In this document: piece by piece, positions 1,099-41,720 of the stretch | Position numbering within the stretch: the first letter of the stretch is position 1 | How the letters are laid out: each line of letters starts with the position of its first letter | NCBI GenBank assembly: GCA_002269645.1 | Contig: NIVC01000476.1 | Location: 1 to 64,000, forward strand | Source: Macrostomum lignano | Lineage: Eukaryota | Direction: 5' to 3' | DNA: 64,000 nucleotides | Notes under the pieces: generated by a model | Seen by the model: only the letters and a program-made list of their open reading frames with translations | Databases searched by the model: none | Told to the model about the DNA's origin: nothing | Program-made: the position numbers and the translations under genes

Positions 1099-1794
1099 CT
1101 GAAGTCCCCCCCTAGCCTTTGACACTGTTCAATCAAATAAGTTGTTCGAGCTCATCTAGATGTTCAATCTGACCTTCGAGACCTTTAACAGGAGGTATTT
1201 GGATGAAAAAGAGTTTATATAAAAATTTGCTGTCTGTTTCTGTTTCAGTACTAGAAGTAGTGCTGTTGGCAAGCGTTTTTTATTCCACAAATTTTATCTA
1301 TAAGCGGATTGCTAGTCTAACTGTATGCTATCGTAGATTAGCAATCCATTCTAATTTAACAGACAGTCTTACTAAATGAGTACATTATTTATTGTATGTG
1401 CAATATGATTCACTTCCAAATTTCATTTAATTTTGCTTTCCTGTACATAAAAATGCATGAATTCATTGCTTGTTATTCATCATTTTAACTGGTACAGTTT
1501 TTAGCTTATGTTCTTTTTTACTGAAATCCAGCACTAACAATCAGAACTGATCAATGCACCTCTGCTGTTTCTATGCATATCCGTCTCTCTTCACACACTG
1601 CAAGCATTCCGGAGTCTTTGATTCTGATAATCCACTTCTTCTAGCACTTCTCTGTGAGTGTTGGCAATGGAATTGAGCTTTGTGATATTGATTTATTTGG
1701 ATTTCCTCTTTGGTTGTTGGAGCCCAAGTTCTGAAGACCTTTTGTTTAACTGGAAATGTAAATGGTTAATGTGTTATTTAGTAAACACTAAAAC

Positions 1795-1985
1795 AGACAG
1801 ACAGACAGACAGACAGACAGACAGACAGACAGACAGACAGACAGACAGACAGACAGACAGACAGACAGACAGACAGACAGACAGACAGACAGACAGACAG
1901 ACAGACAGACAGACAGACAGACAGACAGACACTAGAAAAGACACTAAGACAGAAAGACAGACAGACAGACAGACAGACAGACAGA
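1795..1985. repeat. (GACA)n microsatellite
   Basis: Pure tetranucleotide array; much shorter at the paralogous site 18917-18950. Confidence 0.97.
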
Positions 1986-3418
1986 GTTTTAGAAGAGTTT
2001 CAGCGAATTCAACCTACCGATATGTATCGAAATATAGATTTCTTTTACTGGCTGCACTTTTACTTGACGGTTTGTGTACTTTTCGCTCTTTTTGCATGGC
2101 CGTTCAGCACTGCCCTGAGGAAAGGGGATCAGAGCCGCAGGATTTGCACCCTCGCACCGGGCACTGCACTGCTCTGGTGCAGCTGCACCAATCGGTTAAG
2201 CGCACCTGTACTGCTATAAACTGTTTATCATCCTCCCTGCGGCCTGATCCCCTTTTTCGGACTGCTGGCTGAAACATTTCGCCGAATATTTCTGTCGATC
2301 GCCTCGCTTTTCCTTGTTTTAATTTTTGATTTTGTCATTTGAGCTCTACAGCAGATGCAATGGGGAGTCCGACTCCTGCCAATGGCGTTTGATAATCACT
2401 GATTGAGTAGCTTTGCTTGCCTCTCTGACTTGCGTGTGTTCCAGTGACTGATTGACTGACTGATTGATAACTCTTATCTGATTGTTTTATTACTCCGTTA
2501 ATCAGAAATGCGAATAAAGCGTTGCGAAAACTAAAGTATTACTGAAGCTGAAATTTTTTTTGTTTTAGGAGTTTTGAAGATTGTCTGAATTGGTTTTGTT
2601 TTGTTTTATCTGCCTGAGTAAGTTTCACAGATTGCAATCCTAGAATTGCCGATGCGTGATTGGCTAAGAAGTCTGGCCAATCTGCGTGCTATATTAAACT
2701 CCTCCTAAATATATGCACTTTTAAGGAGTAATGCAACAACAACAAGCTTTTATTGCCCTGTGAAAAGCGGCTCTCGTGAGCTACGAGCGTGTAAAGCAGT
2801 AAAACCATTTTATACTACAAGCCTGCGCATTCAATTAGTTGATAGACCAAGTCAATAGAAAATGGTTTAACTGCTATCGTTAGTTAATTGCTCCCATTTG
2901 ATAAACAACTAACTCTGGTATAAGAAATATCGTAAAAGAAGGGTGAAGGGTGCTATTAGAGACCATAAAAGTGGTAAATATTGTACTCAGCAAAACAGCT
3001 CACAGAAAAGAGTACATGTCGGAATCTAAGCTGATTCGTGATGTTTTAAGATGCAACAATGTTTGTTGAAATTGGCGTTGACTCTCATTGAGCCGAAATC
3101 GAGATGCAGTACGGAATTCTTCGAAGAGTTTATCCTTTGCCTGAATTGCCTGGGTCGCCAAACGTTGGCGTCTTTATCGTCAGAGCCCAGGTCACTGTCC
3201 GAAAACATGACAAAAAGACACTCCTACTAACCTAAGAGTACAATTTGGCCCTTGAAATCTAACTATCGGAGTTAGGAGCTAGAAATGAAATTCGCTCCTT
3301 CTATAGGACACGCACTCCTAAAATTCACTCCGAAACGGCAACATCCAGCACCCACAGTAGCTCCAACTCCTCTCTCCTTATTCTTTAGCACTTGCAGAAA
3401 CCTTTATGAGGTCTCCTA

Positions 3419-3613
3419 CAGGCGCGGATCCAGGAATTTATTGAGGGGGGCCAACTTTTTTCATGCTGCCCGAGTAGGAACCCACCCCAAGGCCCAAGCC
3501 CTTTCTTTACTTACTGGTAGAAGGGGGCCAAAGGCCAAGAGCAGAATTTTTTTCGAGGCAGCTGAGGGGGGGGCCATGGTCCCCTTGCCCCCCCCCCCCA
3601 GGATCCGCCACTG
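3419..3613. mobile_element. hAT-type MITE
   Basis: Termini CAGGCGCGGATCC / GGATCCGCCACTG; 8-bp TSD gtctccta (3411-3418 and 3614-3621); empty site in copy 2 at ~20491. Confidence 0.9.
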
Positions 3614-5744
3614 GTCTCCTAAAATGGTCTCCTTAAAGGAGCCTCCTAGCTCTTAAAATTACTCTTGATTCTATAGCACAGGCACTTCCTCCCCAACTTA
3701 CGTCTATGGCCGATCATAAGTTGCTTTTGAGAAAGACCCCCCAGGCAGGCAGAAAATGAATGAGGATCTTCTGTCCTCACATTTCTTCAAGCCCCTCACT
3801 GCTGAGAGAAGCTGCTGATTCCGCCATCTTCGCCCGCCTCATTGGCCTCCAATCTCGCACCTCGCTTGCCTGCTTTGCAGCCAGCCAGCCAGCCAATCTT
3901 CTTCCAGCCTATGGGCTGCGGCTGCACTTCCGCCTCCACACGCAGCCCTGCCGCTTTCCTATAAACATCGGCTCGACTAAGGTTGGGAGGCCCAGCGATA
4001 CCACAGCTGTTGCTAGCAGCAGCTTATATGTAAAATTGTTTTTTTACAAAGTACAGCTCTGCGATATGACTGTCCACATGAAGGAACTTCTGTGCCTTGC
4101 AATCATTTCGTACTGTATAAGTAACAGTAAGTGACTACGACTGTTTCTCCTTAAAGTTAAAGAATTCAATTATTTTTGCTGATGCTGATCAGTGGGATTG
4201 AAAGTTTTCAGTTTTTGAGAACTAAGCTCTGGATGAGGTTTCGCCATTGGGAAATTCTGTGGGGAGAATTTGCACACTACAACCAGAAACAGCTGAGATT
4301 TCGTTCACTGAAACTGTGTGTTTATCTGCCGGTCTCCGGTAGCAGTTCCAGTGAAATCGTACTGGTAAACTGGTGAGCGTACCTCGGACACAAGGCATAC
4401 TTGCTGGATTTTGAATCCAGAAGTTCAGAAGTAAAAAAACACTGAAAACTTTCTTCTGCTTTAGCTGTCCATGGAGCAAATGTCCATGGAGTTTTAGTTG
4501 ACTTACGTGCAGTTCTATCTAATTGGCTGACTGTGACAAAAGCGTAAACAACGCACAATGGTCTCATAACAGGTCATATTTCGAAGTTGTTGAACCTCCA
4601 CATCCACAGGCTGTGCCATCAAGGTCTCCAGAGCTGAGATCGCCAATGCCTGGCAATCGTCTGTCTACAATCACCCAGAATGCGACTGCTTCATCAGATC
4701 AATGGACAAGCCGGGGCAGTGGGCCTATTTTCTTACCAGCGACACTCCGGACCCCTCCGGCTACCAGTGGCTGCTGCTGAAGCTGTTTCGAAGTGTCCCA
4801 GTGCGCTCCATCACTGTCTATGGGAGACAGGAGGGTGAGTCCCCTTCACATTTCAGTATCACTCTGTATAAAATTTCGCACCAGAATTTGCCCCTTAAAC
4901 GTTTCTCAGTCAGCCACAGAGCCCTGGGCATCGAAGTGCTGCTCAGTGAGGAGAAGCCAGCCGGTCTGGATGAGGATGCACCCAACTGCACTGCAGCCAA
5001 TTTCAGTCACAGTCTGTCCGGATTCCAACACTGCGGCTTCACCAGAAATGACAGCAGCAAGTCACTCAGGTCGCACTTGGTGCATGAAGTGACCTGCTCA
5101 GCTGAGGCCGATGTCAAGGTTTGTCACCCAGTTGCTGCTAATCTTTCAATATTGGAATTCGCAGTGCTGCAGCATCGCATTGCAGATGGGGCAGTATGTG
5201 CTGCTGAGGAAGTTCGTGGCCAATCAGACTGACAAGATGATGAACTTTGAGCTGCTTGAAATTGAGAAAAGAGACTGCTTTCAGCGTAACAGAGACAGCA
5301 GCTCTGGCTGCTCTCCAGCTGACTTCTGCAGGCAATATCAGAGCGGATGCTTTGTGGAAGACTTGTCTCAGCTCAAGCTCAATGAGAAAGTGATGACTCG
5401 AGCTCGGCTGCCAGGAAACTGCAGAGCACCTGCTGCATCAAACTGCAGCATCAGAATGCGGAACGGCAGTGATCTCTTGGAGTTGAGTTCGGTAAGAGTT
5501 CGATTGAGATAAATACTTGAGCTTGCACCAGATATGGGAATTAAACAGCGCAGATGGGCATTCGCATTGCAGAGGGCGGTCTTGGCCAGCTCTCTGATTC
5601 TGAGAACTTTTACAGTGCGGCTGCGGATGCACGGGGCGGATTTGAAGTGCCGACACAGCTGCAGCGGTGGGACTGCGATTGGCACTTCGCACACACTGGG
5701 TGTGCAGTCAGCCAGTGAGTCAGGCTTACAAACCCAGGCTTACA

Positions 5745-40985: not shown

Positions 40986-41011
40986 AATGGGTTTTTAATT
41001 AAAAATTGTAA

Positions 41012-41096
41012 AAATGACAACAGATACTTTTCTTCAAGATTTAGTTAATGAGCTAAAGATTCCAAACTTCCGAGGGGTCTTTATGAGCGATAAACT
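41012..41096 (+). pseudogene. N-terminal fragment of Polinton/adintovirus adenain-like cysteine protease
   Basis: MTTDTFLQDLVNELKIPNFRGVFMSDKL directly downstream of pPolB; L.IPxFRGVFMxD.L is how I recall the start of these proteases. Confidence 0.65.
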
Positions 41097-41187
41097 GTGC
41101 ATGACTTTTTTATATGCAATGGCCAAAACCCGAAAGAGCTACAAGGAAATTATTCCAGGGTTTTAGGTTTTGATCTTTATGTCACAG

Positions 41188-41720
41188 GGTTCGACCACTG
41201 CTCACGAAGTACATTTTGTCCTTCAGCGAGCGCCACAAGCAGAAGCAGTTCTGACAGCGGCGCGCTGCTGACGGTCGCTGTCATCTGCTGCTCGGTGGCC
41301 GCAGCCGTCGCAGTGGGCAGCGCAGCGACTGCCGCAGTGCTGAAGCGGACCCGAGCAGCCGACGCCTCCGCCGGCGCCATCAGCCAAGGCGCAGCCGTGG
41401 AGCTGCTGGCTGCTGCCAAGCCGCCCGACCCCAACGAGAGCTGCTTAAGTCTCCAACTGCTTGAATAAACACGTGTTTTATGCAGTGAGAATAGCTCAAC
41501 AGCACTTTTAATCTTTCCAGTCGGTTTACGACAATGCTGAGAGCTGAGACCAAAAGGCGGTCTGTATGGCAATTGACTCGGAGAAGGCAGTATTGAGCTA
41601 CTATGTTGTTTTTGTGAACGTTTCCTGTACTGTCCTTTGATCCTAGCAGACAGATAAAATTTCTTTTCCTATCCAGATTCATCCAATGCAATCAGCAAGT
41701 CAATATGGCTTGCTACGAGC
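41188..41720 (+). pseudogene. Orphan receptor TM exon plus following intron sequence
   Basis: cacag|GGTTCGACCAC..; GFDHCSRSTFC..LLTVAVICCSVAAAVAVGSAATAAVLKR..KPPDPN; the donor gt is lost (aacgagagc). Confidence 0.85.

Follow-up and report, generated by a model that had tools for sequence, protein, structure and literature searches.

Does a tandem array of lectin-like receptor genes record the diversification of a recognition system, or the duplication and decay of one gene? The question is raised by 64,000 nt of the flatworm Macrostomum lignano (GenBank assembly GCA_002269645.1, contig NIVC01000476.1, positions 1 to 64,000; the whole stretch is hereafter called the window), which are eukaryotic and repeat-rich in character. 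An earlier reading, made from the letters without database searches (the sequence-only reading), had described here a birth-and-death array of surface receptors joining an F-type-lectin-like head to several immunoglobulin (Ig) domains, and had proposed an undescribed, diversifying recognition family. Our analysis indicates that the array probably consists of very recent tandem duplicates of one gene, belonging to a lineage-restricted type I membrane family with an F-type-lectin-like head and a C2-type Ig stalk, in a locus that is decaying.

A tandem array of one 14-exon gene

The repeated unit is a 14-exon gene, present as copies A and B, a partial copy C, and two decayed pairs of transmembrane (TM) and tail exons at about 36.4 kb and 41.2 kb (coordinates in Table 1). 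Self-BLAST of the window finds 1954-9294 repeated at 18917-26695 in collinear blocks, with offsets of 16,834-17,607 and bit scores up to 4000. The partial third copy appears as a match of 30810-33237 to A 4584-6445, and the 3' exons are matched more weakly at 36397-36636 and 41182-41712. The comparison bears out the at least three collinear gene copies noted earlier. The two orphan TM exons of the sequence-only reading were located as well, as 3' ends that have both decayed: orphan 1 is truncated and carries a stop, and orphan 2 has no splice donor. The term "birth-and-death" suits the array in a descriptive sense only, as tandem copies accompanied by dead remnants.

The copies are young. Substitution divergence is 2-3% for A-B, 5.7% for B-C and 6.6% for A-C, and A and B share 97-98% identity across 7 kb of exons and introns. 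Identity of this order would also be expected if haplotypes or homeologous copies had been stitched in tandem during assembly; the M. lignano genome is recently duplicated, repeat-rich and hard to assemble. We consider such an artefact highly improbable, given that the units have structures of their own: the A-B spacer holds a retroelement, an intronic satellite counts 9 units in A, 31 in B and 12 in C, and the lesions differ. Copy C, moreover, is 6% diverged with different 5' and 3' ends, and a gene with a SNAP domain and other unique sequence lie between the units.

The gene model was built by hand from open frames and GT-AG sites and checked against the A/B/C alignment and distant paralogues. 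GT-AG borders flank all 14 exons in A and in B, and UniProt models of M. lignano paralogues from another assembly (P0020, P0028, P0031) share the signal exon and the junctions up to Ig3. Two candidate structures were discarded. Reading 4610-5118 as a single exon is ruled out by a 75-76-nt intron at 4835-4909 in the A/B/C alignment. Exon 5 in frame f1 (MGIRIAEGGLGQLSDSENFY…), seemingly backed by P0001 and P0002, was rejected, as paralogues of 45% identity conserve the other reading frame (RAVLASSLILRTFTV…).

Two further features lie in the introns. A decayed Ig half-exon sits inside intron 9 (A 8054-8270, with a stop at 8234; B ~25490-25710), reads GNPDPLRCLRINGRSVMCGVVIDKRDNE, a stop, then HFVQNITVF, and is related to the 33625-33750 remnant of C. 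Because such remnants lie in the present intron 9, the ancestral gene would have had at least one additional Ig domain. In the 34-nt intronic satellite, the 3' splice site and the first 17 nt of the next exon are duplicated in tandem (…CCCTTCCAG, then AGCCCTGCACCACTCAC… across the junction), in about 9 units in A, about 31 in B and about 12 in C. It contains no stop codon in any forward frame, so that each unit offers a decoy acceptor. We rejected the satellite as a coding, mucin-like stalk because the sequence lies in an intron and varies in unit number from copy to copy by non-multiples of 3; a 29-nt satellite is likewise intronic.

Lesions in each of the three copies

All lesions were read from the assembly sequence. 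Copy A is open from its ATG for about 800 codons, up to a stop at 9137-9139, and encodes no TM segment: relative to B and orphan 2, its TM exon has a net 80-nt, multi-gap deletion, which takes out the hydrophobic segment and causes a frameshift. Copy B carries a 5-nt insertion, CAATT (about 22455-22459), in exon 5, leading to RAVLASSLIQF and a premature stop; its remaining 13 exons, TM and tail included, are intact and in the expected phase. Copy C has two frameshifts (one nucleotide lost from a G run and 14 nt from exon 6), a GC donor, and a truncation that leaves it without Ig2-Ig4 and TM exons; only a decayed Ig piece follows downstream, and then the SNAP-domain gene on the opposite strand. 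The sequence-only reading missed that A, B and C each contain a disabling lesion, frameshifting or truncating. As assembled, none of the three copies is in working order as a receptor, and copy A would at best yield a secreted product.

Might the lesions instead be assembly errors, leaving A, B and perhaps C as intact, expressed receptor genes? The 1-nt deletion of C could be one, as it lies in a GGGG run where P0003, a UniProt sequence from another assembly, switches frame, as expected of a long-read homopolymer error, and all other exons of A and B are clean. The remaining lesions make this account unlikely. The 5-nt insertion of B is not in a homopolymer, the multi-gap 80-nt deletion of A is atypical of consensus errors, and so are, in C, the 14-nt deletion, the donor changed from GT to GC and the absence of several exons. 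That decay does take place at the locus is shown by the decayed exons and orphaned 3' ends, and the NCBI-deposited annotation (BOX15 records) contains no protein within the 90% cluster of the window subfamily.

An F-type-lectin-like head

Spliced, the gene encodes a signal peptide, a head of ~175 aa (CAIKV…LLEIEK), a Cys-rich module of ~70 aa, a conserved 47-aa module, four Ig-like domains of ~100 aa, a stalk, a TM segment and a short Tyr-containing tail. The lectin- or discoidin-like pattern reported for the head is real, and invisible to Pfam. With single exons and the spliced window protein as queries, the head was unrecognised by Pfam and the only match overall was a sub-threshold one to C2-set_2. 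F5_F8_type_C and F5_F8_type_C_2 gave no match to the window protein at E ≤ 1, and paralogue P0007 reached a weak 15.5-16.5 bits with F5_F8_type_C against cut-offs of about 28. A phmmer search of PDB sequences with a single window head likewise returned nothing. Family profiles did find F-type lectins and, for the Ig repeats, nectin-4. From 177,635 PDB sequences, an eight-sequence head profile retrieved two matches only, both F-type lectins: striped-bass FBP32 (3CQO, E=1.4e-6, with both F-type lectin domains, or FTLDs, aligned) and eel agglutinin (1K12, E=0.008).

The profile alignment places window GRQE-VSHR-ALGIEV over NRGDCCGER-ISGAEI and keeps the equivalents of Arg79, of the acidic Asp81 and of Arg86. 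Both Arg of the fucose-binding triad are thus present and His52 is replaced by Pro, in keeping with the earlier remark that the canonical His/Arg/Arg set is only partly recognizable. The vicinal Cys82-Cys83 pair is lost, one of its residues being deleted in the alignment.

Structure prediction agrees at the level of fold class. In an AlphaFold model of the 45%-identical paralogue P0005, built on a 14-row alignment that included window exon peptides as rows, the head core has a predicted local distance difference test (pLDDT) score of 64-86. Foldseek of this head against the PDB returned galactose-binding-like jelly-rolls only (SUN, DDR1 discoidin, muskelin, CBM32 and F-lectins), the F-lectins being 3cqo (rank 5), 1k12 (rank 13; 134 columns, root-mean-square deviation 4.5, TMt 0.46), 2j1r, 2j22 and 3lek. 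The jelly-roll expected for the head is therefore what the paralogue model gives. Because the fold search equally favors SUN and discoidin domains, the model fixes the fold class only, and the F-type assignment rests on the sequence profile; profile homology, not structure alone, supports an F-type over a discoidin or SUN identity.

Several observations weigh against this reading. No Pfam model scores above threshold on any part of the protein. The fucose motif H-X24-R-X-D-X4-(R/K), defined together with the calcium motif h2DGx by Vasta et al. (2017, PMC5712786), is absent, the window having …DTPDPS…(22 aa)…GRQEVSHR, that is, R-x-E-x3-R. The calcium motif is absent as well: the segment opposite FBP32 AIDGN is of the CF-x-x-S/T type, and no family member has DG there. 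The structural model is that of paralogue P0005, a single-sequence AlphaFold model of the window protein being unusable (pLDDT 38). The Foldseek E-values are only about 1e-3, with TM scores of 0.37-0.57, and SUN and discoidin domains score level with F-lectins. Given the absent fucose and calcium motifs, lectin activity may be lost.

It is possible, though less likely than not, that the head keeps the lectin fold and binds no sugar, acting as a protein-binding or structural module comparable to those of discoidin-domain receptors, SUN proteins and muskelin, and that the family comprises Ig-superfamily adhesion molecules. The change of His52 to Pro, the missing h2DGx and Cys82-Cys83 and the shortening of RxDx4R to RxEx3R fit that account, as do the top Foldseek matches to SUN, DDR1 discoidin and muskelin at the level of F-lectins; FTLDs that deviate from the motifs may have lost or changed their specificity (PMC5712786). 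Paralogues of 30-45% identity nevertheless conserve two triad residues out of three, together with the acidic residue of the salt bridge, which suggests constraint on the site, and the sole relatives at the sequence level are true fucolectins.

Ig repeats, membrane anchor and tail

The C2-type Ig domains of the sequence-only reading hold up. A ten-repeat profile has nectin-4 D2 as its best match (E=2.6e-5), with PVR D2 and antibody constant domains ranking next. The C2-set_2 model, whose cut-off is 21 bits, gives 19.8 bits for the window protein and 21.0 for P0007. Ten paralogues are labeled "Ig-like domain-containing" in UniProt. Homology to C2-set domains is evident from the repeat profile, and the canonical Cys(B)-Trp(C)-Cys(F) core is not retained. 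Neither the four window repeats nor the paralogues have a Cys in strand B. The Cys of strand F is invariant, and a further invariant Cys stands at or next to the strand-C Trp position, preceded by a conserved His (HxC). The HxC Cys and the missing strand-B Cys together predict an unusual C-F disulfide. All repeats, in A (6016-8814) and in P0005-P0012, have in common a strand-C signature, [G/A]-x-P-x-P-x-x-H-x-C. The Cys-rich module between head and repeats is of low confidence in the P0005 model (pLDDT <50, residues 169-214). A PAN/Apple identity for it, suggested by the UniProt name of P0002, was not confirmed, with no Pfam PAN match on the window protein or on P0002.

A type I membrane topology is predicted from a signal peptide, a single TM segment and basic residues after it, all read directly from the sequence. 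The signal peptide, MKELLCLAIISYCISN, stands at the N-terminus of A and B. Only B and orphan 2 have the 27-residue hydrophobic segment followed by KRTR, which A has lost by deletion; copy B alone has an intact TM exon, and orphan 2 retains the segment and has lost the splice donor. In B, KRTR would act as the stop-transfer signal, and a short tail follows that ends in SVYYYAES. The tails of the window copies consist of SVYYYAES and a stop, whereas the longer tails of paralogues P0008, P0025 and P0012 carry VVYAQV, TEYTEI and TEYLDI, which resemble immunoreceptor tyrosine-based inhibitory or switch motifs (ITIM/ITSM), together with a VYYYEENP motif.

In intact members, these parts would act in series: the distal jelly-roll head would bind a ligand outside the cell, whether or not a glycan, the Ig stalk would project the head away from the cell surface, and the Tyr motifs of the tail could couple binding to adhesion or signaling.

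Divergence and distribution of the family

Comparison of A and B gave no sign of the diversification that the sequence-only reading had proposed. Divergence is 2.05% in exons and 2.40% in introns, so that the two copies are 98% identical in both alike. The coding changes are 25 non-synonymous and 16 synonymous, and the ratio of non-synonymous to synonymous changes per site (pN/pS) is 0.48 overall, 0.66 in the head, about 1 in Ig1 and 0.25 in Ig2-4. The A-B comparison shows no excess of non-synonymous changes, and the changes are too few to carry a dN/dS test of selection. Among subfamily paralogues, variation is scattered, not clustered. One intron is mosaic: within intron 4835-4909 of A, 57 nt (4845-4901) contain 17 A-specific substitutions, a 23% difference from B and C in a patch where B and C differ by 4%. 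This looks like gene conversion from a more distant paralogue. Because near-identical copies are each damaged and 3' ends are orphaned, we read the locus as a record of rapid duplication, gene conversion and decay rather than of adaptive diversification.

Outside the window, the family was traced by an exhaustive phmmer search of 1.84 billion representatives, which returned 15 relatives. Of the relatives found in all (about 20), those whose source was looked up are all M. lignano proteins. The window exons match M. lignano proteins only, at 92-100% identity, and UniProt holds at least nine further subfamily sequences at 80-98% identity. Distant members in the NCBI-deposited annotation (e.g., PAA49974.1, 804 aa) are full-length with long ITIM/ITSM-like tails, and one distant member is a single gene on its contig. 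No Pfam family covers these proteins, which bear only "uncharacterized" or automatic names; their gene IDs were not found in published paper texts, and the literature on M. lignano lectins yielded lectin-staining and adhesion papers only. On the available sequences, the family is real, undescribed, as had been supposed, and so far restricted to M. lignano.

The same restriction, seen in all databases searched, invites a reproductive account, in which the family serves gamete or partner recognition and not immunity, and turns over rapidly under sexual selection, as do the F-lectin bindins of oysters. Fast-evolving reproductive genes typically show taxonomic restriction of this kind, and sexual selection is a subject of study in the hermaphrodite M. 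lignano. Diversification of molluscan FTLDs has been attributed to gamete-recognition bindins (PMC5712786). Bindins, however, are secreted tandem FTLDs and not Ig-TM proteins, and the ITIM/ITSM-like tails of the paralogues look more like those of signaling receptors; we judge a reproductive role improbable.

Comparison with known systems

The FTLD partners listed as frequent in a review of F-type lectins are CTL, pentraxin, CCP, TM and FA58C, and the combination of an F-type-lectin-like head, an Ig stalk and a TM segment is not among them (PMC5712786). The window head resembles F-type lectins (AAA 1K12, FBP32 3CQO) in an 'xxQSS' N-terminal strand, a W-x-L-x-L core strand, the Arg79/acidic/Arg86 segment, a G-x-E-V strand and the jelly-roll fold class. 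It differs from them in the Pro for His52, in lacking h2DGx and the vicinal Cys82-Cys83, and in a spacing one residue shorter. Classical F-type lectins are soluble and have one to four FTLDs, whereas the window family has a single head on an Ig stalk with a TM segment, and this head goes undetected by Pfam/SMART-type models. Drosophila furrowed and CG9095 (FTLD, CTLD, CCP and TM) are likewise membrane-anchored mosaics with one N-terminal FTLD on a stalk of repeated modules; CG9095 is without two triad residues, and a role in adhesion is established for furrowed (PMC5712786). Their stalk, though, is made of CCP/sushi repeats and a C-type lectin domain, not Ig, with no detectable relationship beyond the FTLD, and they are conserved single-copy genes in contrast to this lineage-specific tandem family.

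Snail FREPs and amphioxus VCBPs, which act in the immunity of invertebrates, are similar in joining Ig domains to a domain of the carbohydrate-recognition type and in belonging to multigene families that include tandem members. FREPs are secreted, with N-terminal Ig domains and a C-terminal fibrinogen lectin, and VCBPs join V-type Ig to a chitin-binding domain; in the window family, the lectin-like domain is N-terminal, the Ig domains are of C2 type and the protein is predicted to be membrane-bound. We found no evidence of somatic or allelic diversification in the window family. Ig-superfamily proteins of the nectin, CADM and nephrin type share the nectin-4 D2 best match, the GNPxP motif typical of C2-set_2, the type I layout and short tails. 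The window family differs in having no V-type distal domain, in HxC replacing the strand-B Cys and strand-C Trp, and in the lectin-like head on top.

A broader proposal is that Macrostomum evolved surface receptors of its own for immune-type functions, allorecognition or gamete recognition, a counterpart in flatworms of the FREP, VCBP or Alr systems. It would bring together a re-purposed F-type head of new specificity with neither calcium nor His, the HxC Ig stalk, ITIM/ITSM-like tails, and tandem arrays that expand and die with gene conversion. We put it forward tentatively, as fairly unlikely in this full form.

Neighboring genes and elements

Copy C and orphan 1 are separated by the open frame with the SNAP (soluble NSF attachment protein) domain, which appears intronless and whose N-terminal part runs through a 9/11-nt satellite (35409-35723). 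No long-terminal-repeat pairs were found around the retroelements. Two short open reading frames (ORFs), 36614-36892 and 40482-40889 (+), lie on either side of the 37-40 kb retroelement near the orphan exons. They have YTDTDS and KSY motifs and share FYQDLLTRKDLYDLSEYPE, resembling fragments of a family-B DNA polymerase, perhaps Maverick/Polinton-like; Pfam gave no match on them. Farther downstream, among ORFs 52340-53785, 56129-56959 (+) and 61997-62794 (+), weak similarity to mitochondrial sphingomyelinase (mit_SMPDase) was seen, as well as one match to Kelch repeats. Long satellites of 21, 24, 49 and 51 nt alternate with these ORFs, which probably belong as exons to unrelated genes.

Table 1. 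Coordinates of the array copies, their exons and neighboring elements in the window.
Feature	Position	Strand	Remarks
Copy A	4066..9158	+	14 exons, GT-AG and translation; signal exon and junction confirmed by P0020, P0028, P0031
Copy A signal exon	4066-4126	+	ATG and signal peptide
Copy A head exons	4610-4834, 4910-5118, 5186-5491	+	first third of 5186-5491 completes FTLD-like head, remainder Cys-rich module
Copy A exons (Ig1)	5573-5714, 6016-6179, 6272-6404	+	
Copy A Ig2 exons	6886-7034, 7110-7263	+	
Copy A Ig3 exon	7356-7679	+	
Copy A Ig4 exons	8380-8522, 8631-8814	+	
Copy A TM exon	8855-9019	+	damaged
Copy A tail exon	9090-9158	+	
Intron 5 of A	5715..6015	+	filled with 34-nt satellite; expanded in B (about 22580-23622), present in C (32418-32815)
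Copy B	20920..26634	+	same 14 exons as A
Copy B exons 1-5	20920-20980, 21463-21687, 21764-21972, 22040-22345, 22427-22573	+	
Copy B exons 6-10	23623-23786, 23879-24011, 24319-24467, 24543-24696, 24789-25112	+	
Copy B exons 11-12	25820-25962, 26071-26254	+	
Copy B exon 13	26295-26539	+	intact TM (GVLLTVVISCLVAAAVAVGGAATAAVL-KRTR)
Copy B exon 14	26608-26634	+	tail SVYYYAES, stop
Copy C	30602..33189	+	partial pseudogene
Copy C signal-peptide exon	30602-30662	+	own, diverged; MPVRLKEFLYLAVIQHCVHR
Copy C exons	30836-31059, 31135-31343, 31411-31716, 31795-31936	+	1-nt deletion (G run) in 30836-31059
Copy C exons	32816-32965, 33057-33189	+	14-nt deletion in 32816-32965; donor GT to GC at 33057-33189
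Decayed Ig exon remnant downstream of C	33625..33750	+	…GQEVQLEIRHTVSSSRRMNGGSVMCGLVIDKRNNEKYFVQ
Orphan 1	36397..36636	+	5'-truncated TM exon with internal stop; intact tail exon 36587-36613 (SVYYYAES, stop)
Orphan 2	41188..41547	+	full TM exon 41188-41435 (…GALLTVAVICCSVAAAVAVGSAATAAVLKRTR…KPPDPN), GT donor lost; tail exon 41521-41547 (SVYDNAES, stop)
Retrotransposon pol fragment, A-B spacer	10639..13681	+	reverse transcriptase, RNase H, integrase; part of 17-kb period
SNAP-domain gene	33760-35709	-	650-codon open frame; domain in C-terminal 240 aa, Pfam E=3e-46
Retrotransposon pol fragment	37166-38902	-	RVT_1, RNase H, integrase
Retrotransposon pol fragment	45612-46763	+	RVT_1 only

Implications

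The direct functional interest of the locus is modest, as it mainly displays duplication, conversion and decay. The head, for its part, illustrates how far an FTLD can drift: the His, the calcium site and the Cys-Cys pair are lost, two Arg are kept, and the domain is still recognizable. Little is known of innate recognition receptors in flatworms, and M. lignano is available as a transgenic model. If intact members of the family bind glycans, they would make flatworm recognition of non-self or of gametes readily accessible to study.

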